Below are positions 1,315 to 52,585 of a stretch of 64,000 bases of DNA, piece after piece. A program made the position numbers and the translations under genes. This DNA comes from Epithemia pelagica. Taxonomy: Eukaryota; Protista; Bacillariophyta. Under the pieces are notes generated by a model. The model searched no databases. It was not told the DNA's origin and saw nothing but the letters and a program-made list of their open reading frames with translations. The stretch's first letter is position 1; each line of letters starts with the position of its first letter. Where the stretch lies: contig OX337228.1 of NCBI GenBank assembly GCA_946965045.2, positions 124,001 through 188,000 on the forward strand, given 5' to 3'.

Positions 1315-4300
1315 ATGTCTCGTGTGCCGGCAACATCCCTGGAGGCCCCCACTCATCATGCCATGGAGGTGGAGACGTTGGAGTCTAGTTTGGCCGCCCC
1401 CAAGAAGATCCTCACCCAACAAGAACAACAACCACAAGAGTCAAACCCAATCGTTTCGAGCGACGAAGCATCTCCCGTCGCAACGACCAGGGTACGTCCT
1501 GTGAGGGCCGAGGATGATCATGAGCATGAGGAAATGAAGGACCCTGGTCCAGCGAACGACACACACCAAAGAACAACAACAGAAGAGACGCCCACGTCAC
1601 TAAACAATGTGTGGGAAGCACTCGAGTCTCTCGATTCGGAAGGATGCGCTTGCACAGGAGGTTTAGCGACAGAGTTGCCCTTTTTACCAGGACTGGTGGT
1701 GGAAAGAGTCGGACAAGTCCAGGTACCAATGGATCCCGACACGGCCACCAAACTCCAAACAGGGCAACAACTACAACAACCACAACAATCGGTTCGGGAC
1801 AAGTCGGACCGTATGCTTCAAACGGTGGGTGACATTTTGGTTCCCAAAGACCACCAAGACAACTGTAACGTGGGTAATGGCACAATTCAAGTGGATGCCG
1901 ATAAGATCACATTGACGAATCCAGCCTGGTGTGCTGGTTTGAACGAGCTGACAAAAAGGGTATGCACCGATCTGGGTGTCAATCCTGACATGGTACAGTG
2001 TGAATTGGACCAGCTCTGGCTGCGTCAAGCCGGAGACGGTTCGAAACAGTATTGCAATACCGATGGAAGGTTTGCCACGTTGGTGATACAATTACCCAGT
2101 CGCTTTACTGGAGGCTCCTTTGTTGTGACTCACAAGGGCACTACCCAAACAGTTTCCCTGCAACATGCCGATACCTCTCCCTATCAATGTCGCTACGTGG
2201 CATACTACGCGGATTGTGAGCATGAGATTCGACCCATTGAGTCGGGTCATCAACTCGCTCTCGTGTATTCGCTCTGTTTTACCGGCAGCCAAGATTCGAA
2301 ACCGTCCCTGGCCAATGTCCAAGACGGTTCGTTCCGGTCGATCATGGAGAAATTGGACAAGAGTCAATCTCTCTTTGCTCTTCCCATGGATCATCGTTAC
2401 AGTTCGGTTTCATTGGCACAAGAAGGAATCAATGCCCTCCAGGGCAAGGATCGATGGGTAGCGCGGACGATTGCTCGAGTAAAGGGATGGGAACTACTCA
2501 TGGCCAAGATCAAGGGATGGGACATTCAGGAGAAGGACCACACAAAAATTTGCTGGGAAGAACTTTTCCACCAAGATGGAAAAAAGGCGAACGCGCATCA
2601 ATCCTGGCTCGACAAGGAACTCAACGTTGATTCGATCCAAAAGGGAGGCAATATATTGGCAGACGAACAGGGTGCCAAGGAAATGTGGAAGCTCGTAGAT
2701 TCGACCTACCACAAACAGTATCGTTCGTGTATTTTGATCGCCTTTTCTACGGCTACAGTCTTTGAGAGAGTCTGCCGTTCTGATTTCTCCAAAGCCTGTG
2801 AGGAAGTTCAAAAGAATCCGGCCCGTCTGGACAATGCCTTGGAGTTCATGACGAAATCCATACCAATTGTTCAATCTAAGGATTTTGTCATCCTCCACTC
2901 GTTCATTCAAGGCAAGAGCTTGTTTTGGTCGTCACTGAAGGCCATGATGCAGGGTCTGTCCAAATGCAAACAAGTTCCATCGTCGAATGTGATTTCTATT
3001 CTTGCCTTATTGATACAAGAACATGGATGGAACGACGAGAAGATGACTCCTATCCGTCTCTTTCTGGAGCAGCTTGCTTATATTGACAGCGAAGCGGGTT
3101 GCATGGAACTCTTGACCTTGATGGAGCATTTTTTGACAATCAAGAAAGTGCTACAGGACGACAAGGCTATCATGGACACTTTGGTGGAAAAGACGATTGA
3201 TAATTTTGCCAAGGGCACTGGAACCACGGATTCAAGCTTGCGCTATAGTGACATTGCTCCCAGGAACAGAGGCGAGATTTACAAGCGAATTGAAACACTT
3301 TCACAATCCCATGGATACGCAAACATTTCATCTGCTGCCAAGGCATGCTTGGACAGGATCCAAAAGATGAACAAAAGGGAGAAGCTGCTTCCGGCTTTGG
3401 AGGATCAGATTGCAGCTGTAGAATCCATTTATAACAAGATCCCTGCCGCGAAACTTGATACCTGTCTGGAAGTTTCGATCCTGGATACCTTTGCCCACTT
3501 GCTCAAGGACTACGGTGGTTACAGAATCAGTTTCTCAAAGGAGTTTCCCACCATTCACGCGTTTCTTAAGAGCACTCTTCTTACTGGGGATCTTTCAACG
3601 CTATTTTGGATGAGATGCGGTCGAAAATGAAACTCCCATCAACTCGCTTTTCTTCCATCTTGGCTTCCGTGATACAGGAACATGGATGGGACGACGAAAA
3701 AGCTGCTCCAGTCCGGCTCTATTTGGAACAGCTTCCTGACAAGGGAAAAAATAGCGATTGTTTTCAATTTATGGTGTTGATGAAGGACCTTTTTGCACTC
3801 AAGAAACCTTTGGAACAGACGGCACCAATTGACTCCCTGATACAAAAGGCCATCCGAAATTTCGACGAAGCAGAGGGAAAAGACGATCTAATGCTCCCCA
3901 TCACATCTACATTTAAAACAAGCCGTAAAAGTGATTTATGAAATGCTTGAAAAGCTTGGAAAGTCGCACGGATGGGATGGTGTATCATGTATTGCCAAGG
4001 CAATCTTTTTCCGAATCCAAAGATTGAATAAGGAGGAGGCATCCTGCTGGAGAGGCCGAGAGGAGAGACACTTGGTTGAGACTTTGGTCGAACAGATTGA
4101 AGCGTTGAAATCGTTTCACGCAAATATTCCGCCTGTTGATTGCGGTAAACTTTTGGAAGAATCGATTTTGGATGCATTTGCCGACGTGGTGGAAAACTAT
4201 AGTGCTGACAAAATCACTTCCTCGGACCACTTTCTAACCCTGCACTCTTTTTTCAAGGACAACTCCAAGTATGGGATTTTATTCAAGAAGATTCTAGAAG

Positions 4301-5610
4301 GGATGTTGTCTGAATCGAAACTCCCACCCGCGCCCCTTATATCCATCTTAGCATCCATGATCAAGGACTCTGGATGGAACGATGAGAAGGTGGCTCCGTT
4401 CCGTCTGCTTCTTGAACGGCTTGGTGAAACGGGGAAGAAAGTAAATTGCATTGACCTCTTGACCTTGATCGAGGTTTTTCTATCAATCAGGAAAGCTTTT
4501 GAGGACAAGTCTCGAATCGATTCCCTGATAGAAAAGGCTCTCCGTACTTTCGATACGGCAACAGGAGAATGTATTCCGTCGTATGACTCCGATGACTCAT
4601 ACGACTCCGACGATTACGAGTCCGAGGATTCATTCTGTCCATACGCATATCGACAAAAGAAGTCCAAGGCGTACTCCAACGAAGATGCAAGAGAGATTTA
4701 CGATCATCTTGAAAGGCTTGCGGAATCACAAACATGGGAGAGTATATCATGTGCTGTCAAGTCGTGCTTTGCCCGAATTCGAAATGTCAAGAAAAGAATG
4801 AATTTGAAATGTTTGGTCAAGCAGATTCGAGCGCTGGAATCAATTGCTAAGATCGTCCCCAGCATGGAGGTGGACAGTCTACGAGAACCCGTTCTCAAGG
4901 AGTTTGTGAGCTTTCTCACCGGTAAGAATGGTTGGTGGAAAGACTCGGAGCTTGAACGTATGCTAAAGAATCTCGCCATTTACGGAACTCCCGAAATGTT
5001 TCGAGATGTGGAAAGCTGGGCATCCGCGGACACCTCCTCAAGTCTTGCGAAAGTGGACTCTGTATTCCAAAAGCTCACTTCTACCAGTATCAACGCTAGG
5101 TACATGAAGGCCAAAGACAAATGTATCGCTCATGTACATAAATGTGTTCGCAACCAAAAAGTTGATGAGCTTATATGTGAAGAGGAGCGTCTGATCCGGG
5201 AGACTTCAGACGGTCCTCCAGAGTTTTCTTGGAGCAGACCATTTGCCGAAACAGGACATAAAGGGTTGGATGCTTTTCTTCAAAGCGATCGACCCGGTTC
5301 TTATGAAATTCGCGTGGGAGGGGGAAAAGACAACGCCAAGAGTGTTGTGCGAAATGGCACAATCATATCCCACGGTGATGCCGAAGACATTCAAGTGGAA
5401 ATCAAGGCTAGTAACAAGACGGGGAAGAATGCGTCCGTGATTGTGACCAAAATTGAGGAGACAGATCGCACCGAAATGGAGAACTCCTACCAAGATAATA
5501 TTCGAGAGCTTGCCGAAGTGCGTGCCAAACTGGAACAATTGGGCCATCGGAAACGTCCAACGGGACAAAAAGAGCGTCCGAAGAAACGCGCCAAAGTAGG
5601 AAGAAAGTGA
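1315..5610 (+). pseudogene. 2OG-Fe(II) dioxygenase-like/helical-repeat paralog 1, frameshifted and catalytically degenerate
   Basis: ORF pieces 1276-3630, 3606-3941 and 3931-5610 align collinearly with paralogs 2 and 3. 1-bp deletion at ~3572 (aag ag- cac vs aag aat cac) and 1-bp insertion in the A4 run at 3927-3930. HRD is replaced (KQYCNTDG). Three GWxDxK units and C-terminal KKRAK. Confidence 0.85.
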
Positions 5611-5978
5611 TCTTGAGTGATAACTGATACATAAAGTCTGATATTCGACGACATGGTTAGCCTCTTTCGGAGCTCTTCAGTGACCTCTGTTGTCTTTCGA
5701 TCCGAGATATTTTTGTTGTGAGTCAATGTGCTGTTGTAACGTCAAGAGATGTCCCCCCGCGTGCGCGCCATTTGCGCTACCTCCACGCGCAAAATCCACG
5801 CCAACAATCCGACTCGGGATTGGAATCGGATGCGTGTTTTCCCTCTTGACCATGGCGAACTCACTGTCTGTTTCCTCTCAATCCTTTTCCTCAACACTGT
5901 GGCCTTCCCTTTGTTGAGTAGCAAGTTCAAGGTTTCACATCTGTGAAGGGGTTGATTTCAAAACAGTAAGAAGACACC

Positions 5979-8900
5979 ATGTCGTCCCCTGTTGTACCAT
6001 TGGCGGCAAATGACAGCGCCCCCAAACCAATGGATACGAGTATGGACGTAGAGAATTCGGCAGCCAGGATCCTCCAAGAAGAAGATTCCAACCCAATCAT
6101 ATCGAGCGATGCGGTATCTCCGGTCACTGTGGCACAGGTGCATCCTGTAATGGCAGAGGATGATGAGAAAATGGCGGAGGACCATGAACAAGCGGTCGAC
6201 CATGAAACACGTGATGAGACGACCACGCCATCGTCCCTCAATGATGTGTATCAGGCTCTGGGTTCCCTCGACTCGGAAGGATGCGCTTGCACAGGAGGTT
6301 TAGCTACAGAGTTGCCATCCATGCCCGGGTTGGTTGTAGAGGGAGTGGGAAAAGTCAAGCTACCGATTGATCCAGAAATTGCTTCCAAACTCCAATCCGT
6401 ATCCAGTGGCCTATGCTATCAAGAAGTGGGTGACATTTTGGTTCCAGTCGAGGCTACTGACGCTGACATGACTCAAATCGATGCCAAAAAAGTAACCGTT
6501 ACGAATCCTACCTGGTCGACAGGAATTAGAGCCCTGACGAAAAGGGTTTGTACTGCTCTCGGGGTCGACCCGGATCTAGTGCGAATGGAGCTATCCAATC
6601 TCTTGTTGAATCAAGAGAGCGACTGTTCGAAAAAGCATCGAGATTTGAAAAAGATGGATGGAAAGTTTGCATCCCTGATGGTACAACTACCAAGCCACTT
6701 TACGGGAGGGTCCTTTGGAGTGACTTACAATGGCAACACCAAGACGTTTTCCATGCAAGATCCGGAAACATGTCCATTTAGCTGCCAATTTGTGGCACAT
6801 TATGCCGATTGTGAGCATGCGATTTTGCCCATTGAGTCGGGCCATCAGCTCGTGCTTGTTTATTCTCTCTGTTATATTGGTAGCGAATCTTCCAAACCGT
6901 CCCTGACCAATGTCAAAGAAGGTTCATTGGGGTCGGTGATGCAGAAATTGGACCAGGGTCAATCTCTTTTCGCCATCCCCATTGATCACCAGTATGAATC
7001 TATGGCACTGGCACAACATGGAGTCGATGCTCTAAAGGGCAAGGATCGATGTCTGGCTCGGACGATTGTTCGAGCAGAGGGGTGGGACATTGTGATTGTT
7101 AAGGCCGATGGATTGGACATGAATTCCAACTTTCCTGGGATGATTTTCTTTAGAGAACTATTTGACCCAAATGGAAGAGATGCAAAATCTCATCAAAAAT
7201 GGCTAGAAAAGGAACTTAGCTTTTGGTTGCTGAAGAAGGGAGGCAGCGTGTTGGCCAATGAGGATGAAGCCAAGGCTATGTGTGAAGTCGAAGACTCGAC
7301 GGATCCGACCCACTATTCATATCGTACGTGCATTTTGATCGCCTTTTCCACACATGCGGTCTTTGAGCAAGTTTGTCGCTCCGATTTCTCCAAGGCAGTG
7401 GAAGAAGTTCAAAAGAATCCAAACCTTTTTGACCGTGTATTGGAGTTCATGAAAACGTCAAAGCCAATCCTGTACTCCAAGAATTTTCTCATCCTCTACT
7501 CTTTGATGGAAGGAAAGAGCATGTTTTGGTCATCATTGGATGCAATGATGGAGGGACTGTCAAAAAATAAACGAGAAGTACCATCCTTCCAAGTAATTTC
7601 CATCCTTGCCACCTTGATAAAGGAAAATGGGTGGAACGACGAGAAGATAGCTCCTATACGTTTTTATCTCGAAGAGGTTACAGAACCTTCAAGAATGAAT
7701 GATTGCATGGACCTCTTGACATTGATAGAGCACTTTCTCACCATCAAGAAAGTGGTACATAATGAGAAGACAGTACTGGAAACGTTGATCGAACAGACAG
7801 TTCACAATTTTGACAAGAGATCAAGATATTCGGTTGATGGTTCAATCTCTCCTTCACGTAGAGGCGAGATTTACAAGCGTCTTGAATCACTGGCCCTATG
7901 CCATGGATACGCAAGCATTTCATCTGCTGCCAAGGCATGCTTTGTTCGAATCCGTGAGGTCGACAACATGAAGACGTGGAACTACCTACCTTGGGCGATT
8001 GAAACGGAGACGCTGCTGCCGACTTTGGTCGAGCAAATGGAAGCTGTAGAATCCATGCATACCAATGTCGCTGGCGCTAAACTGGATACCAGTCTAGAGG
8101 AATCGATACTCGATGCCTTTTCCGGTATGGTGAAGCACGACTTATTTTGCCGAATCAGTTTTTCAAAGGAGCTTCCTACCATTCACGCTTTTCTGAAGAA
8201 TCACTCCTCCTATTGGTCAACCTTCAACGCTATGTTGCAAGAAAGCAAGTGGAAATGGAAACTCCCATGCTCGTCGTTCACTTCCATACTAGCTTCCGTT
8301 ATACAGGAACATGGATGGGACGACGAAAAGATGGGTTCAGTCCGGCTTGTTTTGGAACAGCTTCCTGACATCGCACAAAAATGCGATTGCATTGAATTCT
8401 TGGAGTTGATTGAGCGACTGCTGTTATTAAAGACAACTCTGGGAGATAAGGCACCGATTGATTCCCTGATAGAACGGACCATCGAAAATTTTGACATGGA
8501 CGATTTTGACATGGACGATGCTGAGGAGGGAAGAGGTGGAGCGTCAAGTAAAACCAGAAAGGCCATTTATAGTTTGATTGAAAGGCGAGTCAAGGTACAT
8601 GGATGGGAGCGTCTAGCTGCTGCTGTCGACTCCTGCGTTGTCAGAACCCACAAACTTGTTCCTTGCGATGAGGATGCGTGGCTTGAGATCTTTCTGGAGC
8701 AGATTGATTGGGTGAAATCACTTCGTGCCAATAAACGTCTCGAGACATCCATTGTGGATTCGTTGGAGGGAGTTGTCCACAGAGAGATTTTGGATTCGTT
8801 GGAGGGAGTGACGTGGAACTACAGTCAGACGAAACTTACTTCCTCAGATCGCTTCACCACCCTTCACTCATATTTCAAGCACGACATCACTTACTGGAAT

Positions 8901-10136
8901 TTTTTCGAGGAAATTCTCGAAAGGTTGGATAATGAATCCAAACCACCGCCTTGTAATCTCACATCGATCTTAGCATCCACCATACAGGAACGCGGGTGGC
9001 TCGATTACAAGGTGGCTCCGATCCGTCAATTTCTGGAACAACTTGCTGAAAAAGGAAGCAACGTCAATTGTATTGATTTCTTGACCTTTCTCGGGGTCTT
9101 GTTCTCGCTCAGGAAATTGCTGGAGCTCCGGGCGCCAATTCAGTCTCTGATTGGAGATATGATCTGTAATTTCGAATGGCAAACAGAACAAGGACAATTG
9201 CCCCGAATGTACTTCACGAATGAAAATCCAAAACAGATTTACAAGCGGCTTGAAACGCTGGGGGGATCTGACGCTCGCGATATATCACGTGTCATAAATG
9301 CATGCTTTGTCCGAATTCGTAAAATCAACGAAAGGAAAACCATTTTTGAGCATATGAACGACCAGATTAAAGCGATTGAGTCAATTGCTACTCATGTTGC
9401 GGACATAGAGACAGACTATCTTCGAGAACCTATATTCAGAGGGTTTGTGAGTTCTCTCACGAGCGGTGGTTTTGGGGAGGCCTCCGAAATTCAAAGAATG
9501 TTAGAGAAACTGGTCATGCACGGCACCGCTGAGATGTTTGGAGATGTGAAAACCTGGGCAAGCACAGCCTCGTCCTCAAGGCTAAGGGTACTCGACTCGG
9601 CATTCCAAAAGCTGTCGTCTACGAGTCACAACGTGTCGAATGCAGATGTCATTGAAGAGTGTATAACGTATGTGCGTACTCGGGCCCGCCAACAGAAAGT
9701 TACTAAGTTGAAAAATCAAGAGAGACAGCTGATTTCTTTGACTGAAGATGGCCCTCCAGTGTTTTCTTGGAGAATACCTAGCGCGAACACAGGCAACGAT
9801 AGTTTGGACGCTTTTCTCCAAAGCTCTCGACCAGGTCCTTTAACAATATGTGTGGGAGGAGGAATAGGCCATGCCAGGAGTGTGGCACGTAATGGCTCAA
9901 TCATGTCCCAAGACTATGCCGACGAGATTGGTGTGTATCTATTTGAAAGTCAGGAGAGAGGCAACCGCGCATCTGTAATGGTGTTCAAAACAAAGAGACT
10001 GCACGATACCCAGCTTGCGAGATACGAGTCGAATGTTGAAAAGCTTGCCAACGTGTGCGCTCAACTGGAAAGACTGGGTCGTCGTCCCCGTGAGCGAGCG
10101 GAAGAAGAGCCTCCCACGAAACGTTCTAAAGTATAG
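5979..10136 (+). CDS. 2OG-Fe(II) dioxygenase-like/helical-repeat paralog 2 (1385 aa), partly degenerate active site
   Basis: KKHRD...QLPSHFTGG...HYADCEH...SGHQLVLVYSL: HxD and distal H are kept, the 2OG-binding Arg is Gln. Three helical units; FSW...DAFL...VGGG...A(S)V C-terminal domain; PPTKRSK NLS. Confidence 0.9.
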   Translation: MSSPVVPLAANDSAPKPMDTSMDVENSAARILQEEDSNPIISSDAVSPVTVAQVHPVMAEDDEKMAEDHEQAVDHETRDETTTPSSLNDVYQALGSLDSEGCACTGGLATELPSMPGLVVEGVGKVKLPIDPEIASKLQSVSSGLCYQEVGDILVPVEATDADMTQIDAKKVTVTNPTWSTGIRALTKRVCTALGVDPDLVRMELSNLLLNQESDCSKKHRDLKKMDGKFASLMVQLPSHFTGGSFGVTYNGNTKTFSMQDPETCPFSCQFVAHYADCEHAILPIESGHQLVLVYSLCYIGSESSKPSLTNVKEGSLGSVMQKLDQGQSLFAIPIDHQYESMALAQHGVDALKGKDRCLARTIVRAEGWDIVIVKADGLDMNSNFPGMIFFRELFDPNGRDAKSHQKWLEKELSFWLLKKGGSVLANEDEAKAMCEVEDSTDPTHYSYRTCILIAFSTHAVFEQVCRSDFSKAVEEVQKNPNLFDRVLEFMKTSKPILYSKNFLILYSLMEGKSMFWSSLDAMMEGLSKNKREVPSFQVISILATLIKENGWNDEKIAPIRFYLEEVTEPSRMNDCMDLLTLIEHFLTIKKVVHNEKTVLETLIEQTVHNFDKRSRYSVDGSISPSRRGEIYKRLESLALCHGYASISSAAKACFVRIREVDNMKTWNYLPWAIETETLLPTLVEQMEAVESMHTNVAGAKLDTSLEESILDAFSGMVKHDLFCRISFSKELPTIHAFLKNHSSYWSTFNAMLQESKWKWKLPCSSFTSILASVIQEHGWDDEKMGSVRLVLEQLPDIAQKCDCIEFLELIERLLLLKTTLGDKAPIDSLIERTIENFDMDDFDMDDAEEGRGGASSKTRKAIYSLIERRVKVHGWERLAAAVDSCVVRTHKLVPCDEDAWLEIFLEQIDWVKSLRANKRLETSIVDSLEGVVHREILDSLEGVTWNYSQTKLTSSDRFTTLHSYFKHDITYWNFFEEILERLDNESKPPPCNLTSILASTIQERGWLDYKVAPIRQFLEQLAEKGSNVNCIDFLTFLGVLFSLRKLLELRAPIQSLIGDMICNFEWQTEQGQLPRMYFTNENPKQIYKRLETLGGSDARDISRVINACFVRIRKINERKTIFEHMNDQIKAIESIATHVADIETDYLREPIFRGFVSSLTSGGFGEASEIQRMLEKLVMHGTAEMFGDVKTWASTASSSRLRVLDSAFQKLSSTSHNVSNADVIEECITYVRTRARQQKVTKLKNQERQLISLTEDGPPVFSWRIPSANTGNDSLDAFLQSSRPGPLTICVGGGIGHARSVARNGSIMSQDYADEIGVYLFESQERGNRASVMVFKTKRLHDTQLARYESNVEKLANVCAQLERLGRRPRERAEEEPPTKRSKV

Positions 10137-10950
10137 GATATATGACAGAAGCGATTGTGATTGATGAATGATCTCGATGTGGCACATTGGGAGCTATGGC
10201 AGAAGCAATTGCGCTTGATAAATGATAGATAGTGTTATGTTCCATGACATGCCTCACGGTATTCGGACGAGTTACTAATCCATGACTTTAGCTCCTTGAG
10301 CGTGAGATTTTCTCGAAGGATGCAATCCCACTTTCACGTTCAGCTTGTGGGGCGCATTCCTGTCCTTTTGACCTCGGACTTGTGTTGGTAAACTGCCTCT
10401 ATCGTGTTTTGTTTGCCGACTTGACATTTGATTTGTTGGAGGTGAGGGGATGGAGGAGGGGGACGACTACCATTTTGTCAGGCATGTCCCGGTGTGATAC
10501 GACACATACTGCTACTCCTACTCCTAGTGGGTAGTATTAGGGAGAGCACATAGCTCGAATTCCTGCCCAATGCGTCCGGCTTTTAATTTTTGAACAATTT
10601 TTCCGAAAAATTCGAAAATCGTTTTCTTTTCTTCTCTAGACTAAGGAGATGGGCAGTCGCACTTTTACAGCTTTCTCCCGACTTAGGCGGGACTCATCCT
10701 GCTTGGAGTCGCGTTGCGTGAGCGCGCCAAGTTTAAGCCGATCACACCCGTCGGCCGTCGGGCCACCTCGGGGACGGATTGCCACACATCTCTTCGTCGA
10801 ACACCTTGTTTGCAAATTTCAACAACAAGACCTTTCGGCGTTTCGCTGTCTTCTCTTGATTGTGACCTTCTCTACTCTGTTCAGCAATTTCAAGAATTGT
10901 CTCTTCGCTTATTGAGAGGGAATCGAAAGAGCTAAGAACAAGACGACGAC

Positions 10951-13900
10951 ATGTCGAATGTACAGGCATCTGTGGTCCCATTGGCGGCAGATGACACTGG
11001 TCAACAGGCAATTGATACGAGTATGGAAATCGAACCGTCCAAGAATTCGGCACTCAAGATCATCCAAGAAGAAGAGTCGAACCCAATCGTCTCGAGCGAT
11101 GAGGCTTCTCCTGTTGCTGTAGCGCGGGTACGCCCTACTTCTAGGATTGAGAATGATGAGGAAATGGACCAAGCAGACGACAAACAAGAAACAGAAGAAA
11201 AAACGACGACAACCTCTCTCATTGATGTGTACCAAGCATTGGATTCTCTCGACTCGGAAGGATGCGCTTGGACAGGAGGCTTGGCCACAGAGCTGCCCTC
11301 CATGCCAGGGTTGATTGTAGAAGGAGTGGGAGAAGTCAAGTTACCGCTGGATCAAGACACTGCCACCAAACTCAAAACAACGTCCAGTAACATGCTCTTT
11401 CAAGCGGCGGGTGACATTTTGGAAGCTACTGACGCTGACGTGGCTCAAATCGATGCCGATAAGGTTACTTTGACCAATCCAGCCTGGTTTGCTGGCTTGA
11501 AAGCCCTCACGAAAAAGGTTTGTGCGGCTCTCGGAGTCGATCCGGAGCTAGTACGAACTGAGCTATCCAGCCTTTTGTTGAATCTAGAAGGAGACTGTTC
11601 CAGAAAGCATCGAGACTTGAAGAAGGCAGATGGAAAGTTTGCATCCTTGATGATCCAACTACCAAGTCGCTTCACGGGAGGGTCCTTTGCAGTGACTCAT
11701 GACGGTAACACAAAGACATTTACCATGCATGATCCTGAAACATGTCCATTTAGCTGTCGTTATGTAGCACATTATGCCGATTGTGAGCATGAGATTTTGC
11801 CCATTGAGTCGGGTCATCAACTCGCCCTGGTCTATTCTCTCTGTTATACGGATGACGATTGTTCCAAACCGTCGCTTGCCAATGTGCACGAAGGTTCGTT
11901 AGTATCAGTAATTGCGAAGTTGGACCGGAATCAATCTCTCTTTGCCATTCCCATTGATAAAGGATATGAGTCTTTGGCATTGGCGCGTCATGGAGTGAAT
12001 GTCCTCAAGGGAAAGGATCGATCTCTGGCTCGGACGATTGGTCGCGTCGAGGGGTGGCAACTCTTGATTGCTAAGGTGGAAGGAAGCGGCTCACATCGGA
12101 GAGACGTTGGAAACATTTCCTGCAAAGAATTGTTTCACCAAGATGGAAGCGATGCGCAAGCGCATCAAACCTGGCTCGACAACGATCTCTGTTTGGATTC
12201 GATAACGAAGGGAGGCAGTTTATTAGCTGTTGGGGACAGAGCGAAGTACGTGTGGAATCTCCAAGACTCGAGAGATCGGTATAGCTACATCAACAGGTAT
12301 TCAACGTCCATTTTGATTGCATTTTCCGAGAACTCAGTCTTTGAGAGAATTTGCCGTTCGGATTTCTCGAAAGCTCTGGAGGAACTTTCCAGAACTCCCA
12401 TCCATATGGACCGTGCCTTGAAGTTCATGGCGGAGTCAACACCGATCCTTAACTCAGCAGATTTTGTCACCCTCCACTCCTTGCTGAAAGAGAAGGACTC
12501 ATTTTGGTCGTCGTTGAATGCGATGATGCAGGGACTGTCTAATAAGAGTAGACGGGGCATGTCTACAAACAGACGTGAAGTCTCCAAAGGTGAACGTGAA
12601 GTGCCTTCCTCCACTGTGATTTCAATTCTGACCTCATTGATAAAAGAACATGGATGGGACGATGAAAAAATAACTCCTATCCGTCTCTTTCTGGAGCAGC
12701 TTGCTGATATTGACAGGCAAACCGATTGCATGGAATTCTTGTCCGTGATGGAGCACTTTCTTACAATCAAGAAAGTGCTACAGAATAAGGATATCATGGA
12801 CACTTTGGTGGAAAAGACGATTGATAATTTTGCCAAGGGCACTGGAACCACGGATTCAAGCTTGCGCTATAGTGACATTGCTCCCAGGAACAGAGGCGAA
12901 ATTTACAAGCGCCTTGAATCAATGTCCCAAACACATGGATACGAGAGCATATCATCTGCTGTCCAGGCATGCTTTGTACGAATCCAAACAATGAACAAGT
13001 CTGAGACGGAGAGGCTGCTTCCGACGTTAGTAGAGCAGATTGCAGCTGTAGAATCCATACATACCAATGTCCCGGACGCGAAACTGGATACCACTCTTCA
13101 TGAGTCCATACTGGATACGTTTGCTAGCTTCATCAAGAACGATTATGGTTCCCGAGGAATCAGTTCCTCACAGGAGTTTCCGACGATTCACTCTTTTCTG
13201 AAGAATCACGCCTCATATTGGCCATCCTTCAACGTTATTTTGAAGCGCATGCACAAAACACTCCCTGGCTCTTCCTTGACTTCTATCTTAGCTTCTGTGA
13301 TAAAGGAACACGGATGGGACGACGAAAAGATGGCTCCAGTTCGGGACTTTCTTGAAACGCTTCCTGACAGGGCAGAAGCATGTAATTGCTTTGTCTTCTT
13401 GAATTTGTTGGAGCCACTGCTCGTGTTGAAGAGAACTTTGGGAGATAAGGCACCGATTGATTCCCTGATAGAACGGACCATTAAAAATTTTGACATGGAG
13501 GAGGGAAGAGGTCGAGTGTCAAGTAAAACCAGAAAGGAGATTTATAGTTTGCTTGAAAAGCGAGTCAAGGAGCATGGATGGGAGATTCTAGCTGCTGCTG
13601 TCGACTCCTGCGTTGTCAGAACCCACAAACTTGTTCCTTGCGATGAGGAGGCGTGGCTCGAGATCTATATCGAACAGATTGATTGGGTGAAATCGCTTCG
13701 TGCCAACAAACGTCTCGAGACATCCATTGTGGATTCGTTTGAGGGAGTGGTGGAAGAAAACATTGTCGGTTCGTTTGAGGGAGTGGCTTCGAACTACTGT
13801 GCTCATATACTTACTTCCTCAGCTCGTTTTACTTCCCTTCATTCTTATTGCAAGAACAATTCCAGTTACTGGAGTTCATTCGAGATGATTCTGGAAGACT

Positions 13901-15183: not shown

Positions 15184-15634
15184 TTACATATATTTGAGAA
15201 CGTTTCATGGCTGGTTTTTATTGACTTTATGAGATTGGTTTTCCTTCTATGTACGGGTTTGAAGAGAAGGAGCGTCTCTCGGCTCCCCGTTGGAAGTTGG
15301 CTTCTGCTCTGCATGTGAACAAGAAATGCGATCTTGAAAAGCAGTAGAGTTCATGTCTTTGGAGTGGCATGTTCCTTCCCTCTGTCTCGGAACCGGAGGA
15401 TTGGACTATGTGTCGGTCCAAATTTTATGACCATGTTTACCTTTGTGGCGCCAACAGATATCGCCTCGCTTGCGCGCGCAAAATCTCAACAATCGAGCCG
15501 ATTGGCCACGCTAGCTCGGCTTCATTTTTAGTGCGCCACTCGTCTCACTTGTGATCGCTTGGAATGTGCAAATTTCCAGGCTTTTCCTTGTTGAACCCCT
15601 GATCAAAGTTTGACTCCTTGTAGAACCCGACACC

Positions 15635-18732: not shown

Positions 18733-18765
18733 TACAAGCTGGCTCACATTTCGTAGTGCATGAGT
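18733..18765 (+). repeat. left TA + terminal inverted repeat (TA CAAGCTGGCTCACATTTCGTAGTGCATGAGT)
   Basis: Reverse complement matches 25695-25727 at 32/33 positions. Confidence 0.9.
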
Positions 18766-20654: not shown

Positions 20655-20725
20655 TTACATATAAGAAACCATATCTAAATATTGAAGAATTGCTGTTGTT
20701 TACCGCTACTGCTGCCTTAGTTCTT

Positions 20726-34504: not shown

Positions 34505-36324
34505 TTACTCGTTAGACTCTGCCCTTACGAAAGCATCCCAGTTCTGCTCGAGTGAGTGCTTAAAGTCATTCCACATGGCGGTGAAATTTTTCCTGGTGCC
34601 AGCCACCCACTCAGTCATACGCTGTGGTTCCAAGTCGATCATACACACTCTTGTAATGTTTCCATGAGTATCTCGCACAAGAGCTACGTTTCGCCAAGCC
34701 GGATCACAATGCCAGATTCCCTTGTTGAAAAATCTAGATCGCATGGTGTGTTCCAGCCCTTTCAAAACTTGTCGCAAGTCAACGGTTGTGGACATCTTCT
34801 CCAGATCCGGCATGACTATTGCGTCACCCCCACCCCACTTGCCGTGCGTTGCTCTTGGTAACCAATTGTGGTAGGCCTTGTTCCAGTACTCGGCAGCCTT
34901 TTCCGCCACTTTGTCCGAAGCCAGCTCAACTTCTCCTCCCTGGGCATCAACATGGCTCTGTTTCTTGACAAAAAATTTCAGCACGCATAGATTCAAATTT
35001 CGGCTCATTGCGCGATAAACACGCCCGTGATCCCCGTGACCCAACGGCTCCAAAAGATACAGCTTACCGTTCCTTGAAGACGGCATTCGACCTTTGTACT
35101 GATCCGGTTCGTGCTTGATTCTCTCATATCCCCCCAATGTATCACCCTTTCGTACAACATACAGGAATTCACGACGGTGCGGCGCAACTGTTTCCACCTC
35201 CGATTCCGACATCTTCGCCATAATCCATGTCAACATTTCTAAAGCAGGCCGTCCTGCTGGCACAACTTGCGAGGCGTACAAAACACCACGCTTCGGTGGT
35301 GACGCTGACTCTGGTTCTTTATCCTCCTTCTCCTCTTGATTGCACTCCTCTTCATTGCATGGCTTAGGCGACATAGGAGGGGAATTACGTTCGGGTCGCG
35401 AACGCTTCTGTGGTCTTTCAAAAGATTTCTTGCCAACCTGATCTGTGTCTTGGGGGTCAGATTGGCTTAGTTTGCCATTGCCGGTGATATTTTCATCTTC
35501 CTCCTCCAATTCATACTTGAAAAAGCGCCATTCCTTTAGGTTGAAAGGATGCCGTAGACTTGCTTTAAACCGTAAAGCGTCCGAAGCGGTATCATCTGGG
35601 AAGCAACCTGGGCAACGACTTTCGGGTGTGTCATCGGCTCGGGGTCTGGAGGCGTGTGGCCCGGTCGATGCGGTTGCTTCACCTCCGTTGTCCCGCATAT
35701 TTGTCGGTTTTCGTTGCGGAGAACACCAATGTCAATCGTTAGTCCATTCAAGGACGACTCTGAATCAGGGCGGAGGTCAAATTTGCAGCTTCGAATAATG
35801 TCCTTCATGAGATTTTCAACTTGAACCTGCAAATGTAACTGTCGCGAGAAGTATATGACACCCTGCTCCTTTTCGTCCAAAACGTGATGGTACCGTTCGA
35901 GGGAAACATCAAGTCGACCAGGGACCATATGCACCAACCTATTCGACGGGAAATCCTCCAAGTTACGGTGGACATGCGGCACACCAGAGCTGCCTCCTGG
36001 GTTCCTCTTGTCAAAGGCCAATTTAGAAAACTCAAACGAGGTCGAACTAACCTCAATTCGGTAAGTTGTCCCAACAATTTCTAAGGTACCACCATGAAGA
36101 CGTAGGAGAGTGCCGAACGTCGGGACTACAGCTTCCACTCCATCCGGAGAGGCGGCCTTCAATAAAGGTGGGTACTCTTCGGAGAGACCACCGGTGGTTT
36201 CATGCGCCGCTGATTCGCCCCATTTGACAACCACTTTTCCGCCCATTGTCTTTATCACCTTCACTACTACGTTCTCGGTTGATGACAGAGCTTCTGCGGC
36301 AGTAGCTTTGGCGTTTGCTGACAT
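34505..36324 (-). pseudogene. Crinkler/RHS-type REase + protein-kinase gene with one frameshift
   Basis: IDIGVL...GTTEVKQP (PD-(D/E)xK), then GILST* at 35536-35538. Adding 1 nt gives GILSTYKEWRFF and joins ORF 34505-35698, which has LGHGDHGRVY, CVLKFF, HCDPAWRNV and MIDLE kinase motifs. Confidence 0.75.
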
Positions 36325-39970: not shown

Positions 39971-40207
39971 GCACGATCGATCCAATACAAAATTCTGCGT
40001 GTGTGCAGCACATCGCTCTTTTCTCTGCTGTTTGTTACGCTTCGTTTGTACCACGCATCTCATTTTTTGAGGCAGACAACAGAAACAGCATCACACTCTC
40101 TCCTCGCTCGCTTTCTTCGGGTCGGTTGGTTGATTCCCTTCCCCAGTGGCATTTACTTTGTTCCTCTTGTTTGTGAAACTATACACATTGCGGTCTCGTC
40201 CGTCATC

Positions 40208-41626
40208 ATGTCTGGTTCAGAACAGTTCTCCTCCTCCTCCTGCTGGCCTCAATCTTTTGGTTCAACGGTCCTGGACGCACCACAACCACAACGACAACAG
40301 GCTCGTGGTGCGGGGAAACCTCCTCGACGAATGGTCGTTGCCGTACTGTCCTCCTTACTGCTAATGGTTTGCTTAGTCGTTTCGAGTGCCTCCTCGTTTT
40401 CCTCGTTCGTGTGGCAACCACTCGACCTTACCGTACCACAAGCACAACCACCCGAACACCGTCTGTTGCGAGCCCGTGGTGGCGGTGGAGGCCGCGGCAG
40501 TCGTGGTGGTAAAGGATCAAGTAGTAGTACCAACAACAATGGCAGTGGAAGTTCTACCGGAGCTTTTGTGGGAACGACCAATGCGGGTCGCTTCAACAAT
40601 AACAACAATAATAACGACGACGAGGACGAAAATGACGTGGAGGGATGGGTCGTTTTGATCATTTTTGTGGTAATTGTCGTGGCCGTTTCGATTGGGATTG
40701 TCTGGTGTTGTTATCGACGCCGCAAACAAGAAGCGATGCAACACAAATTTTCGTCGGCCGTCACCGCCACAGCCATTGCCACGCAACAAGCGCAGGCATC
40801 CGCACCAGGATCATCGGACCACCAAAAACCAACCGTGACCACCACACCACTGGCGAAACAACCACGGCATTATCAACAAGCCTACCAAGCGGCCCATCAA
40901 GCCGTTTGGAAAACCAAGGAGGACAAAGATGCCACACCAATGACGACAGCGTGCATCTTGCCCATGAATGGCGTGTACCAGGGCACTTATCGCGATTCCC
41001 AGGGCAACCTTCAAACCGTCACGACGCGGCTCGTGTGTTCCAAACCGGCGCCCTCAACGACAACCACGACGACAAGTGGTGGTGAAGAAGGACAAGAACA
41101 AGAACCCAATCACAACAACACGGTCTGGACACTTTCGGGATCGGGTCAAGATATTTTGGGACCCTTTGAGATTGTCGAGGGATGCGTGTGTTCCACGACG
41201 GGTCGGGCCTTTTGGGTCGAAGCGGCCGCTCGACGACGGGTCTTGACCGCTGGAACCTTTGTCGTCAATGACACTACCACAACCTTGGTGCAATCGAGTT
41301 GGATTTCCAATCAATCTTGGGGACGAACCGCGACACCCTTCCTCTCCTTTGAATTGGTAACGCCCGAGGACAACCGTTCGTCCCAGCACACAACGACCAA
41401 CACTGGTACGACCAACACAATCCGCACAACCACCACCTCACCGCCCCTCTTGGTACCGGCCAATCCCTTGCCCGTCTCGGCCGATCCTGCCCAGACTGCC
41501 ACAACCACAACCGTCGTTCCATCCTCATCCCTGGTCGAACACGAATCCAGTCACCACAGTCATGACCAGGACGACAATGACGAGGACATTGTGGTGGTGG
41601 TGGGAACCCCCGTCGTGCAGGAATAG
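40208..41626 (+). CDS. single-pass membrane protein: signal/anchor, RLL motif, G/S/N-rich luminal part, TM helix, cytosolic beta-domain
   Basis: MVVAVLSSLLLMVCLVV, EHRLLRARGGGG, N-run, TM WVVLIIFVVIVVAVSIGIVWCC followed by YRRRK, then NGVYQGTY...LSGSGQD...FEIVEG...TGRAFWVE. Confidence 0.85.
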   Translation: MSGSEQFSSSSCWPQSFGSTVLDAPQPQRQQARGAGKPPRRMVVAVLSSLLLMVCLVVSSASSFSSFVWQPLDLTVPQAQPPEHRLLRARGGGGGRGSRGGKGSSSSTNNNGSGSSTGAFVGTTNAGRFNNNNNNNDDEDENDVEGWVVLIIFVVIVVAVSIGIVWCCYRRRKQEAMQHKFSSAVTATAIATQQAQASAPGSSDHQKPTVTTTPLAKQPRHYQQAYQAAHQAVWKTKEDKDATPMTTACILPMNGVYQGTYRDSQGNLQTVTTRLVCSKPAPSTTTTTTSGGEEGQEQEPNHNNTVWTLSGSGQDILGPFEIVEGCVCSTTGRAFWVEAAARRRVLTAGTFVVNDTTTTLVQSSWISNQSWGRTATPFLSFELVTPEDNRSSQHTTTNTGTTNTIRTTTTSPPLLVPANPLPVSADPAQTATTTTVVPSSSLVEHESSHHSHDQDDNDEDIVVVVGTPVVQE

Positions 41627-43918: not shown

Positions 43919-46900
43919 ATGTCGTCGAATGGGCCTTCATCCATGATCGTGGCGGAAGGAGGAGGAGGAGGTGACACGGGGAACAACGACCAGGACGAGT
44001 CTGGAACGAATCATATGGATGTATTAGAGCCATCATCCATCCATCATTCGGAGAACCACCTTGCATCCGAACCATTGCAGCCGCTCCTCCAGCCGGTCGT
44101 GTCGACCGACGAAGCCTCTCCGGCCAAGGTGGATCCGACAACCAACGAGCAACCAGCAGAAAACCAAGAACACGAACAAGACGAGTCAAAAGCAAGAGGT
44201 GCTAACGAAGAAGACCAAGAACAAACGGAGCAAGTCAAAGCATTCCAAGAAAAAGTACACATCCCAGCAAACGAAAAGAAAGAAAGCTTAGCACAACAAG
44301 AGGAAGAAAACACAGCCATGCCAAGAAAAGAAGAAAACAAAGCAGAAGTAAAACAAAACAGCGCAGAAGAAACTGGAAATGAAGAAGAAAAAAAGACGCC
44401 ATTGTCTCTAGAAGATGTCTATCATGCTCTAGATTCTCTCGACTCGGAAGGATCGACTTGCACTGGAGGCGTGGCCACCGAACTGCCGGGTGTTCCCGGA
44501 CTGGTGGTAGAGGGAGTGGGGGACATTTTGGTACCCTTGTTGGATCCCGACCATGTCCACAAGCTCAAAGCCGCGGCCCATCAAGCCCCTCATGGACGTG
44601 GCATGGAAACCATTGTGGACACGTCGGTTCGCAACACGCTTCAAATTGACGCGGACAAGGTGACCTTGACCAATCCAGCCTGGCCCAAGGCCTTGCAAGC
44701 ACTGACGAGCAGGGTCTGCACAGCTCTTGGTGTCCCTTCCGATCTGGTGCGAACCGAATTGTACAAGCTCTTGCTCTATGAACCCGGAGGCTTTTTCAAG
44801 AAACATCGCGATACCGAAAAGGCGGACGGTATGTTTGCCACACTCGTCATTCAACTTCCCAGTCGCTTTACGGGAGGTTCCTTTGTCGTCACCCACAATG
44901 GCAAAACCGAGACCTTTGCCATGCACGACCCCGAAACCTCTCCGTATACTTGCCGCTATGTGGCACACTATGCCGATTGCGAACATGAAATTTTGCCCAT
45001 TGAATCAGGACATCGACTGGCGCTCATTTATTCGCTCTGTTATACGGGCAATCAAGAGTCCAAACCGTCTCTGGCCACGGTGGCCGACGGTGGCTTGGTA
45101 TCGGTCCTGGAGCACTTGGATCCGAGTCAATCGCTGTTTGCCGTGCCCATGGATCATCAGTACACGACGGCCTCCTTGGCGCGACTGGGAGTCGGGGCCC
45201 TCAAGGGCAAGGACCGATCTTTGGCCAAGACGATTGGTCGAGCACAAGGATGGAAACTGGTGGTTGCCATGGTCGAACGGACCACGTACGAAAGTGGTGA
45301 GGGGAACTCCTATGTTGGATTTGAGGTTCATGATACCGATTATGGGGAGGTTTGTTTCAAAGAACTGTTTCACCAAGATGGAAGCAGTGCCAAAGCGCTT
45401 TCACGCTGGCTCAAGCAAGACCTAACGTTTGTCGCCGTGGAGGAGGGAGGCAATATACTGGCCCATGAAGACGATGTACTGGAGGAAATGTGGAGATACC
45501 AAGACTCGACCGAGCCGGAATATACTGGAAATGAGGGAGCGAGTCGTGAGACGACCTACAGCACTTGTATTTTGATTGCCTTTTCCACAGACAGTGTCTT
45601 TGAGAGAGAGTGTAGTTCGGATTTCTCCAGTGCACTCCAAAAGGTTCAAAAGAATCCCCGTCTGCTGGATCGTGCCCTCAAGTTTCTCACAAAGTCCAGT
45701 CACAATCTTTCTTCTAGGGAGTTTGTCATTCTCCACTCTGTGATTCAGGGACAAAGCGCCTTTTGGTCATCGTTCGCTACCATTCTCAAGGCACTATCGA
45801 AAAATCGATCTCAATCACCGTCCTCCCGTGTCATGTCGATTCTTGTCTCAATGATTAAGGAACATGGATGGAACGATGAGAAAATGGCCCCAGTTCGTCT
45901 ATTTATCGAACAGCTTTCTGAAATTGGAAAGCAGACTAGCTGCCTGGGACTCTTGTTGTTGGTGGAGACATTTAGTCTCATAAAAGACTTGATGCAAGAC
46001 AAATCACCAATTGACTGCCACGTTCAGAAAACTATTTCTAACTTCGACAAGGCATCGGGAAGTATGAAACGACGATTTTCTCCATATGAAATTGTCTTTT
46101 CGTCACCGGACGACGACGAGACTTATAAGCGCCTTGAAACTCTATCGAAAGTACATGGATGGAAGAGTCTCTCATCTGCTGCCAAATCTTGTTTTGCCCG
46201 AATCCGTAAAATGAACACGACAAGCAGGTTGCTTAAGACCATGACCGATCAGATTGCGACATTGAACTCTATCTATGCCAATATCCCTTCCGGTGATATC
46301 GATCACAGTCTTGATGACTCAATGTTGGACGCTTTTACGCTCTTGGTCAAGAGCGTCGATGCTTACGACATTACTTCGATGGATAACTTTCTTACCATTC
46401 ACTCGTTTTTCAAGACAAAGGCTGCCTATTGGCCATCCTTCAAGATTCTTGTTGAGAGCCTACAGGTTCTAAAAAGATTTCCATCCAGTACAATCCGTTC
46501 CATCTTCGTCGCCACGATCAAGGAGCACGGGTGGAACGATGAAAAGGTGATTCCTATCCGTATGTTTGTACAACAGCTCCCTGCAATGGGAGAGAAAGTC
46601 GATTGCAATGGCCTCTTGACATCGATAGAACACTTTCGTTTGATTATGAAAGTGTCGGAGGAAAAGGCAACACTGAAGTCGTTGATACGCAAGACGATCA
46701 GTACTTTTGAAGCGAAGACTGAGAAATGTTGTCCGTTGTCCAACTCTTACGGATCTCGTCCATACTATGGTAGCTATCATCGGCGATATGACGAATGCGA
46801 ATCTCAAACAGAAATTTCCAATCGACTTGAAACTCTTTCCAAGGCGTATGGATGGGAGAATCTATCATCTGCTGCCAATGCTTGCTTTGCCCGAATGCGT

Positions 46901-47737
46901 AAAATGAGCCCGACCGGAACGTTGCTGAACACTTTGAAAGAACAGATTGCAGCGACTCACCAGTTTTCGACCAATATCCCGGACGCAGATATCGGAAATC
47001 TTCGAGAATCTATACTCAATGCGTTTCTGGACGCTATCAAACATACGAGCGCGTGGGAGTCTGCCGATATTGGCATCCTACTCAAGGAACTTTGTATGCA
47101 CGGGACTCCGCAAATGTTTCGAACTCTCGAAGCGTGGTCATCCACGGTCCCCTTATCTACCCTCTCGAAAGCTGACTCGGTATTGCAACGTATGACTTCT
47201 GCTACTATCAGATCAAAGCACACGGAAGCCAGAGACAAATGTATTGCTCATGTTCATGAACGTGTCCGCGACTTGAAAATTCAAGAGCTAGAAAAACAAG
47301 AGAACGACCTGCTCCGCCATACTCATAATGGTGGGCCGCCCGTTTTCTCTTGGAGAATGCCACTAGCAAAGTCGGGCTCCGATCGTCTTGACGCGTTTCT
47401 TCGGAGCGACCGAGCGAATGCTTGTGAGATTTCTGTAGGAGGAGGAATCGGTCATGCCCGGAGTCTTGCACGAAGTGGCGATAGCACCTCCAAGGGCTTT
47501 AGCGCTCATATTCGAGAAACCCACAAGACGGGGAAAACTGCATCTGTGATTGTGACCAAAACCAGGAAATTGTACGAGGAACAAGTAAAGCAATACCCAT
47601 CCACTGCCAAAAAGCTTGCCAATGTGCGCGCCAAGCTTGCAAAATTGAACCATCGTCGTGTCCCGCCGGTACGAGAAGAGCCTCCCGCAAAACGTGCCAA
47701 GGGACCAAATGAAAAAGAGGTGATTGTAATTGTCTAA
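43919..47737 (+). CDS. 2OG-Fe(II) dioxygenase/helical-repeat paralog 6 (~1272 aa), intact catalytic motifs
   Basis: QAPHGRGMETIVDTSVRNT, KLLLYEPGGFFKKHRDTEK, CEH, SGHRLALIYSL, YTGNEG; two helical units; PPAKRAK NLS then EVIVIV. ATG 43919 preferred over 43508 by comparison with paralogs. Confidence 0.92.
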   Translation: MSSNGPSSMIVAEGGGGGDTGNNDQDESGTNHMDVLEPSSIHHSENHLASEPLQPLLQPVVSTDEASPAKVDPTTNEQPAENQEHEQDESKARGANEEDQEQTEQVKAFQEKVHIPANEKKESLAQQEEENTAMPRKEENKAEVKQNSAEETGNEEEKKTPLSLEDVYHALDSLDSEGSTCTGGVATELPGVPGLVVEGVGDILVPLLDPDHVHKLKAAAHQAPHGRGMETIVDTSVRNTLQIDADKVTLTNPAWPKALQALTSRVCTALGVPSDLVRTELYKLLLYEPGGFFKKHRDTEKADGMFATLVIQLPSRFTGGSFVVTHNGKTETFAMHDPETSPYTCRYVAHYADCEHEILPIESGHRLALIYSLCYTGNQESKPSLATVADGGLVSVLEHLDPSQSLFAVPMDHQYTTASLARLGVGALKGKDRSLAKTIGRAQGWKLVVAMVERTTYESGEGNSYVGFEVHDTDYGEVCFKELFHQDGSSAKALSRWLKQDLTFVAVEEGGNILAHEDDVLEEMWRYQDSTEPEYTGNEGASRETTYSTCILIAFSTDSVFERECSSDFSSALQKVQKNPRLLDRALKFLTKSSHNLSSREFVILHSVIQGQSAFWSSFATILKALSKNRSQSPSSRVMSILVSMIKEHGWNDEKMAPVRLFIEQLSEIGKQTSCLGLLLLVETFSLIKDLMQDKSPIDCHVQKTISNFDKASGSMKRRFSPYEIVFSSPDDDETYKRLETLSKVHGWKSLSSAAKSCFARIRKMNTTSRLLKTMTDQIATLNSIYANIPSGDIDHSLDDSMLDAFTLLVKSVDAYDITSMDNFLTIHSFFKTKAAYWPSFKILVESLQVLKRFPSSTIRSIFVATIKEHGWNDEKVIPIRMFVQQLPAMGEKVDCNGLLTSIEHFRLIMKVSEEKATLKSLIRKTISTFEAKTEKCCPLSNSYGSRPYYGSYHRRYDECESQTEISNRLETLSKAYGWENLSSAANACFARMRKMSPTGTLLNTLKEQIAATHQFSTNIPDADIGNLRESILNAFLDAIKHTSAWESADIGILLKELCMHGTPQMFRTLEAWSSTVPLSTLSKADSVLQRMTSATIRSKHTEARDKCIAHVHERVRDLKIQELEKQENDLLRHTHNGGPPVFSWRMPLAKSGSDRLDAFLRSDRANACEISVGGGIGHARSLARSGDSTSKGFSAHIRETHKTGKTASVIVTKTRKLYEEQVKQYPSTAKKLANVRAKLAKLNHRRVPPVREEPPAKRAKGPNEKEVIVIV

Positions 47738-52579: not shown

Positions 52580-52585
52580 ACTCCA

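Follow-up and report, generated by a model that had tools for sequence, protein, structure and literature searches.

Within a 64,000-nucleotide stretch of contig OX337228.1 of the diatom Epithemia pelagica (positions 124,001 to 188,000 of the forward strand; hereafter the window) we found six paralogous genes, p1 to p6, whose products are supported by structure prediction as 2-oxoglutarate (2OG)-Fe(II) oxygenase-fold proteins of the PHD/P4H-like type. The paralogs split cleanly into a motif-complete group (p4, p5 and p6) and a monophyletic motif-depleted group (p1, p2 and p3), and two of the depleted copies, p2 and p3, have been maintained by purifying selection. In our judgement the locus is fairly probably a diatom lineage-specific tandem expansion of large PHD/P4H-like oxygenases, in which the complete copies are catalytic and p2 and p3 act by binding. 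A division of this array into enzymes and pseudo-enzymes had been proposed from the DNA letters alone (the original prediction), and it is supported by the motif census and the selection analysis described here.

Searches by tblastn with p6 and p3 as queries placed all six paralogs on the plus strand between 1315 and 47737 (Table 1), where p1 to p4 follow one another head-to-tail, 0.37-0.8 kb apart. The sequence of the window is eukaryotic; its open reading frames (ORFs) are long and lack introns, and its GC content is ~50%. It is located on ctg1325l of ENA assembly ERZ21939226, and the colinear ctg1332l of the same assembly represents the other haplotype. The two pieces of p1 were always searched apart, and p5 was read through with an X at its stop. 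The ORF of p6 had been taken to encode 1409 amino acids (aa), which was not borne out, since its first 137 codons are likely read-through of the 5' leader and the ATG at 43919 is the likely start. The prediction of a six-member array holds inside the window, but the family extends beyond it. A seventh copy, p7, lies on the minus strand just past window position 64000 (P0003, L003 2001-5417; its allele P0002, L002 10001-13438; 1138 or 1145 aa); it is motif-complete and its DNA is 82-84% identical to the catalytic region of p6, its closest relative. An eighth copy, P0008 (970 aa), is found on a separate contig of the assembly (ctg1324l; L007 6001-8913) and is independently degenerate, reading PHERG, KKRRD (H to R in H.D) and HNAEHEG; both invariant tyrosines are lost and the 2OG-binding Arg is kept. 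P0008 is flanked by a 452-aa ORF with no Pfam match and by a MYST histone acetyltransferase gene, with a Rad52 gene ~4 kb upstream.

Table 1. Array members and mobile elements of the window, with positions of the main motifs (window coordinates).
Feature	Position	Strand	Type	Motifs and details
p1	1315-5610 (1315-3630 plus 3931-5610)	+	Degenerate type, broken by frameshifts	1315-3630 open, N-module and first solenoid module; 3931-5610 open, remainder; H.D region reads QYCN, H and D replaced by Y and N (2005-2058); SGHQ 2206-2253
p2	5979-10136	+	Degenerate type, 1385 aa; three ~210-aa helical modules	HRD 6591-6644; distal His with Arg to Gln 6801-6848; PHGRG..VR and YTGNEG absent; basic tail PPTKRSK 10110-10130
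p3	10951-15183	+	Degenerate type, 1410 aa; three helical modules	HRD 11563-11616; SGHQ 11773-11820; PPSKRAK 15109-15129; EVIVV tail
p4	15635-18430	+	Motif-complete, 931 aa; one helical module	PHGRG..VR 16004-16054; Y..Y..GGFFKKHRD 16181-16234; His..SGYR 16391-16438; YTGNEG 16928-16945; PPAKRAR 18389-18409
DNA transposon	18735-25725		Class II, ~7.0 kb, between p4 and p5, splitting the array	Terminal inverted repeats and TA target duplication
p5	26754-29378	+	Motif-complete, interrupted in the window haplotype	PHGRG..VR 26997-27047; HRD 27174-27227; SGHR 27384-27431; in-frame TAG 27795-27797; YTGNEG 27942-27959; second stop 29376-29378, 20 codons ahead of the in-frame ..NVIVIEE end
p6	43919-47737 (frame open from 43508)	+	Motif-complete, ~1272 aa; two helical modules	PHGRG..VR 44582-44632; HRD 44759-44812; SGHR 44969-45016; YTGNEG 45521-45538; PPAKRAK 47681-47701; EVIVIV end
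Retrotransposon	47989-55399	-	Copia-type, long terminal repeats	Just downstream of p6, between p6 and p7

The catalytic motifs were read from an alignment of the six copies with 23 homologs, ranging from diatoms to bacteria, and each copy was then scored on 58 columns, chosen because conservation among 38 homologs not encoded in the window reaches at least 90% there. The results showed a clear gap between the two groups, as 56-57 of the 58 columns were kept in p4, p5, p6 and p7 and 37-40 in p1, p2 and p3. All the motifs first reported for p4, p5 and p6 were recovered, in the form QAPHGRG..VR, LYKLLLYE.GGFFKKHRD, YADCEH..SG[HY]R and YTGNEG, and every conserved active-site feature is kept in p4, p6, p7 and the p5 allele of the other haplotype. 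In 2OG oxygenases of this kind a basic residue (Arg or Lys) ~10 positions after the distal His binds the C5 carboxylate of 2OG. At distal His+10 there is an Arg in p4, p5 and p6, whereas p1, p2 and p3 have a Gln (SGHQ). The H.D...H triad is present in p2 to p6, with H137, D139 and H197 (p4-module numbering, used throughout) retained in p2 and p3, and p1 has additionally lost H137 and D139, as originally described.

The losses in p1 to p3 are clustered rather than scattered. They comprise the hairpin motif PxGxG..T..D..VR (64-79), referred to as a lid in the original prediction, the residues Y123, Y128, E129 and F134 ahead of H.D, then E141, M146 and T149, the change of R207 to Gln and the deletion of the YTGNEG turn; p2 and p3 each lack 18-19 of the 58 family-conserved columns. 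The replacements in the β-helix core are identical in p2 and p3 (S123, N128, S134, K141, K146, S149 and Q207), which gives the look of a remodelled but constrained pocket, and the former hairpin motif differs between the two copies. This pattern fits a pocket that may still be in use, with the hairpin discarded. Since both tyrosines and YTGNEG were also lost together in the independently degenerate P0008, these residues possibly form one functional site, and the co-loss pattern suggests that the hairpin motif, the two tyrosines and YTGNEG belong to one functional unit.

To place the family we predicted the structure of p4 residues 62-506 with AlphaFold2 from a 40-sequence alignment (pLDDT 90.4). 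In the model the first ~230 residues form a double-stranded β-helix and residues 230-445 an additional α/β domain, in which YTGNEG sits at the turn of a β-hairpin. Foldseek placed the Pseudomonas PPHD/EF-Tu structure 4iw3 first among PDB entries (E 3.5e-9, TM-score 0.62 on the target); next came a Burkholderia 2OG oxygenase, PHD2/EGLN1, Dictyostelium PhyA (DdPhyA), OGFOD1 and PiuC. The named structural neighbours are all protein prolyl hydroxylases or PiuC/YbiX-type enzymes. The proposed identity as 2OG-Fe(II) dioxygenases was thereby borne out at the level of the fold. TET/JBP, AlkB and JmjC structures were all missing from the first 50 PDB matches for the p4 module, and Pfam gave no match to Tet_JBP, 2OG-FeII_Oxy_2 or JmjC in the window proteins. 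Searches at the sequence level against solved structures, with p4 alone or with a 40-sequence profile, returned nothing useful (best E 0.8), and NCBIfam had no family for the window proteins.

Neutral evolution of the degenerate copies, dN/dS (omega) ~1, had been named in advance as a finding that would speak against the division into enzymes and pseudo-enzymes. Pairwise comparison of the N-modules gave similar omega values for both types, with 0.33 for p2-p3 (dS 0.66), 0.34 for p4-p5 (dS 0.51) and 0.30 for p6-p7 (dS 0.37). Maximum-likelihood estimates (GY+F3X4) were 0.375 for the degenerate p2/p3 clade and 0.262 for the complete copies, and omega=1 was rejected for both (2ΔlnL=55, P ~1e-13, and P ~1e-51, respectively). 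The two alleles of p3 gave an omega of 0.25 over the full length (binomial P 1e-7) and 0.22 in the N-module, those of p2 0.57 (binomial P 5e-4) and 0.27, and the allelic values of the complete copies were 0.22 for p4, 0.43 for p7 and 0.45 for p6. Evidently, p2 and p3 are under purifying selection, the dead catalytic-fold domain included, although slightly more relaxed than the complete copies. As they are motif-depleted yet selected, p2 and p3 are probably non-catalytic partners rather than junk. A search for orthologs in other organisms returned no member of the degenerate clade beyond this assembly, and haplotype and paralog comparisons were therefore used in place of a cross-species dN/dS.

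The second haplotype also showed which copies are intact. In neither haplotype is the frame of p2, p3, p4 or p7 interrupted, which confirms the ~1400-codon frames noted for p2 and p3. The frame of p1 is shifted in both haplotypes but by different lesions: compared with the other haplotype the window copy carries a −1 at 3571 and a +1 at 3932, and the 360 nt between them are homologous coding sequence in frame 3, with stops, while the other haplotype has a +2 at L001 5895. An intron as the cause of the break was rejected, the shifted stretch being homologous coding sequence. The lesions are thus independent, and the allelic omega of p1 (0.32-0.45 at dS 0.20-0.37) indicates that the breakage is recent. 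As judged from sequence, p2 and p3 would count as pseudo-enzymes on two grounds, lost catalytic residues and an open frame under purifying selection; p1 lacks the second, and to call this broken gene a pseudo-enzyme was an overstatement. The description of p4, p5 and p6 as intact enzymes also stands in part, in that their motifs are complete but p5 and p6 carry reciprocal stops. p5 is stopped in the window haplotype only, the other haplotype having an uninterrupted 890-aa gene call, and p6 only in the other haplotype, where an in-frame TGA (GRAQ*WELVV, L006 ~9980) breaks the allele (p6') into two called genes, 431 and 826 aa long. Private lesions in three array units (p1, p5 and p6) show that copies of both types are being lost. 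The allelic dS changes along the array, being ~0.2-0.37 in p1, 0.07 in p2, 0.03-0.04 in p3/p4, 0.07 in p6 and 0.10 in p7. This corresponds to a steep fall in allelic divergence along window 684-18734 compared with L001 4703-22748, followed by a rise at p6 and p7; mosaic ancestry, gene conversion and loss of heterozygosity are all possible causes.

In the phylogenetic tree all copies from this organism formed one clade (support 100/99), and the expansion is therefore lineage-specific. The group (p1,(p2,p3)) was likewise monophyletic (support 100/99), which implies a single degeneration event, and the tree gave P0008 no firm position. The diatom Chaetoceros tenuissimus provides the nearest named relative of the dioxygenase family members. 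This family is a large and well-conserved branch of the PHD-type group; widespread though uncharacterised, it lacks both a solved structure and a dedicated Pfam model, and our literature search found no paper describing it. Species genomes in GTDB contain at least 584 loci, of which 80 were kept; most of these are from Planctomycetota and the others from Saprospiraceae, Chromatiaceae, Verrucomicrobiota and more. The bacterial members are ~780 aa long and encoded by stand-alone genes. Two single bacterial contexts showed variable regions with adjoining toxin-antitoxin and transposase genes and were uninformative on substrate. Eukaryotic members are patchy, occurring in diatoms, the green alga Pycnococcus, Balamuthia, basidiomycetes and the cnidarian Clytia. 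Pfam analysis of eight homologs detected PF13640 only, apart from one Balamuthia homolog that is fused to a tubulin-tyrosine-ligase (TTL) domain. Giant-virus proteins match both domains structurally (Yasminevirus, E 1.9e-15, 446 columns).

Outside the catalytic part the paralogs differ in the number of ~210-aa helical modules, with three in p2 and p3, at least three in p1, two in p6 and one in p4, p5 and p7. The model of the C-terminal part of p4 (AlphaFold2, pLDDT 89) consists of an α-solenoid, a small α/β domain and a long helix, and a fold search with this part retrieved only generic ARM/HEAT-like solenoids, none of them at E<=0.001. Neither Pfam nor the fold search of the C-terminal part revealed a nucleic-acid-binding or histone-reader domain. 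The C-terminal region is taxonomically narrow (57 representatives among 1.84 billion proteins). At its very end the tails of the eukaryotic subfamily, otherwise variable, have a conserved basic PP[AS]K[KR]A[KR] motif in common. Of 23 tails inspected, 14 continue into a terminal [DE]V[IV]V[IL]D or VVDLT. We take the basic motif to fit a monopartite nuclear localization signal (NLS) and the terminal sequence a SUMO-interaction motif. The tails of p1, p2 and p4 have the basic part only, those of p3 (15109-15183) and p6 (47681-47737) have both the basic part and the acidic-hydrophobic end, and p5 is without the basic motif because its second stop cuts the tail off. The nuclear location assumed in the original prediction is thereby plausible, on the strength of the conserved NLS-like motif and the SUMO-interaction-like tail. 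In the N-terminal region an [IV]VS[ST]DEASP motif is found in this organism's copies only, in both types.

The closest known systems are the PHD/EGLN-type and bacterial PPHD prolyl 4-hydroxylases, which have the same double-stranded β-helix, H.D...H triad and Arg at distal His+10. PHD2, PPHD (acting on EF-Tu), PhyA (on Skp1) and OGFOD1/Tpa1 (on uS12) gave the strongest structural matches (E 3.5e-9 to 1e-6), and homologs of the family pass PF13640. The diatom proteins differ from these enzymes in being 4-7 times longer, in having only 12-19% identity to them in structural alignments with no sequence-level match to solved structures, in the extra invariant hairpin PxGxG..T..D..VR, in the second α/β domain with its invariant H.Y, KG.D and YTGNEG, and in the solenoid and tail domain. 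Oxygen, iron and central metabolism are classically sensed by PHD-type 2OG oxygenases, few of whose targets outside animals have, to our knowledge, been identified. As for PiuC/YbiX (PKHD-type, COG3128), some homologs are labelled 'YbiX' and PiuC structures match at E ~4e-6, but with the NCBIfam equivalog one bacterial homolog reached only 20.5 bits, where the cut-off is 143, and the window proteins gave nothing; the family is not PiuC/YbiX.

Among inactive members of the superfamily, JARID2 and other JmjC proteins have lost cofactor residues and are conserved as nuclear non-catalytic subunits or regulators. JARID2 is comparable as a dead 2OG oxygenase, but it belongs to the JmjC branch and is not in tandem with active paralogs, and we found no structural or sequence link between it or JmjC and the diatom family. 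The original prediction cast the dead copies as readers, decoys or regulators, a role that they may have and for which vaccinia C16 is the closest and clearest precedent. The N-domain of C16 has a PHD2-like fold in which the cofactor residues are not conserved, and it binds and inhibits PHD2 (PMC9674614, PMC4298679). Poxvirus C4/C10-like proteins were among the BFVD matches of the p4 module (E 8.6e-9, TM-score 0.29-0.31, root-mean-square deviation 12.6 Å); as these TM-scores are low, C16 is used here as a functional analogy and not as a claim of membership. Unlike the diatom proteins, C16 is viral, is ~330 aa long, has a Ku-binding C-domain and targets a host enzyme instead of its own paralog.

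Taken together, our results suggest the following model. The proteins are built, in order, of an acidic disordered N-terminus, the double-stranded β-helix catalytic domain, a family-specific α/β domain in which the hairpin with YTGNEG is invariant, α-solenoid modules of ~210 aa (one to three), a small C-terminal α/β domain and the basic NLS-like tail. The complete copies are predicted to be nuclear protein hydroxylases, most likely acting on prolyl residues. One ancestor of p1 to p3 lost the 2OG-binding Arg, two invariant Tyr, the PHGRG..VR hairpin motif and YTGNEG together and gained extra solenoid modules, after which p2 and p3 were maintained by purifying selection, with p1 now broken. Unable, as we infer, to turn over 2OG, p2 and p3 would act by binding, their retained fold and enlarged solenoid holding a substrate, a partner or the active paralogs, so that they could serve as adaptors, competitors or inhibitors.

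Several observations weigh against a system of catalytic copies and binding partners. The substrate class is read solely from structural neighbours at 12-19% identity. With the Pfam model PF13640 (2OG-FeII_Oxy_3), a check suggested with the original prediction, the outcome was mixed, as p6 (25.8 bits) and p4 (21.5 bits) fell below the cut-off of 27 and p1, p2 and p3 had no match at E<=0.01; clear homologs of the same family passed, with 27.5-33.6 bits. At the divergence of p2 and p3, chance alone could statistically account for their having kept H.D..H, and the C-terminal part of the p2 alleles has an omega of 0.72 (P 0.047), a constraint relaxed between the haplotypes. No upstream k-mer of 8-12 nt is common to at least four of the six paralogs. 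When all ORFs in 82 bacterial loci were clustered no conserved neighbour emerged (best in 7 of 82), and guilt-by-association therefore yields no substrate. The nonsense codons in p5 and p6' mean that motif-complete copies are dispensable singly, a pattern that agrees more with birth-and-death turnover than with a system of tightly integrated parts.

The same data bear on other explanations. p2 and p3 could be neofunctionalised enzymes that hold iron through H.D..H and perform a different oxidation with another co-substrate or none (compare ACC oxidase and isopenicillin N synthase). The metal triad in p2, p3 and their alleles, core replacements that are identical despite a dS of 0.66 and an N-module omega as low as in the complete copies all agree with this. 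However, ~18-19 of 58 conserved positions, the hairpin motif and the deleted YTGNEG among them, were lost at once, the retention of three residues is not significant at the p2/p3 divergence, and the sister copy p1 went on to lose H and D, and we therefore hold such enzymes to be unlikely. That the motif-depleted copies are decaying, functionless duplicates is very improbable and for p2 and p3 largely refuted. Such decay would account for the different frameshifts of p1 in each haplotype, the relaxed C-terminal part of p2 and the lack of degenerate-clade homologs outside this assembly, but not for long frames that are open in both haplotypes despite a dS of ~0.66, nor for the rejection of omega=1 and the allelic binomial tests of p3 and p2.

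Closest to the original prediction is the reading that the family modifies DNA, RNA or histones, in the manner of TET/JBP, AlkB or JmjC-like enzymes, and that the dead copies read the mark. Conserved NLS-like tails and an end resembling a SUMO-interaction motif, which fits chromatin-associated proteins, are in line with this, and so is the MYST acetyltransferase gene beside P0008, probably a coincidence. The structural matches described above point to protein prolyl hydroxylases or PiuC/YbiX-type enzymes and not to TET/JBP, AlkB or JmjC, the Pfam and C-terminal fold searches gave no nucleic-acid-binding or histone-reader domain, and the TTL domain in the Balamuthia homolog is that of a protein-modifying enzyme; modification of nucleic acids or histones was thus not upheld and is, in our opinion, a poor bet. 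Slightly less credible still is a fast-turnover conflict family, shaped by a host-parasite or selfish-element arms race, with the dead copies serving as decoys that draw an antagonist away from the active enzymes. The patchy phyletic pattern with giant-virus structural matches, the lineage-specific expansion, the nonsense or frameshift alleles segregating in p1, p5 and p6', the transposon insertions within the array and the stand-alone bacterial copies in variable regions near toxin-antitoxin and transposase genes are what such a race might leave behind. Yet omega is well below 1 everywhere, with no pervasive positive selection seen, and no partner or signature of a known defence system turned up, the PADLOC library not having been searched.

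The presence of active-looking and dead-looking copies in one genome, with selection on the dead-looking ones, is a natural experiment on the substrate of the family and on the reuse of a dead dioxygenase domain, and it would matter for diatom biology if the system ties iron or 2OG status to nuclear regulation. If it is instead birth-and-death turnover of a dispensable family, the locus illustrates pseudo-enzyme evolution neatly but in no unusual way. A bolder version, to which we give only a small chance, is that the whole family, which reaches into bacteria and has structural matches in giant viruses, is an undescribed class of SUMO-directed nuclear protein hydroxylases, that the YTGNEG domain completes the active site and that in this diatom the enzyme has divided into catalytic subunits and selected non-catalytic paralogs, whose enlarged solenoids gate substrate access. 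In that case the gating non-catalytic paralogs would give a tunable switch sensing oxygen, iron or 2OG, in an organism where iron and carbon/nitrogen status are ecologically decisive.

The window also contains two mobile elements, both absent from the other haplotype (Table 1). The terminal inverted repeats of the DNA transposon are 33 nt long (18733-18765 and 25695-25727) and 97% complementary, and the other haplotype shows a clean empty site. The transposon contains ORFs of 1068 aa (22192-25398, minus strand, no Pfam match) and 274 aa (19482-20306, plus strand) and a SET-domain ORF (20726-21889, minus strand; PF00856, E 5.8e-8). The copia-type element is young, with 240-bp long terminal repeats that are 99.6% identical, and encodes an RVT_2 polyprotein (48350-52579) and a protein of 694 aa (52586-54670), both on the minus strand. 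Two ORFs at 30101-32641 and 40001-41626, both on the plus strand, are low-complexity and rich in Thr, Pro and Asn, with one predicted membrane span each; they have the block ..G.G.D..G.F.V.EG..S..TG.A.W.E.. in common and are paralog-like, with no convincing Pfam match. An ORF at 34505-35698 (minus strand) contains DUF5898 (PF19250, E 1.1e-9), and its allele in the other haplotype was called as 605 aa. At 60057-62045 (plus strand) there is a Utp14-like ribosome-biogenesis gene (PF04615, E 1.3e-9), whose nearest named relative, with 44% identity, is from the diatom Amphiprora (MMETSP1065).

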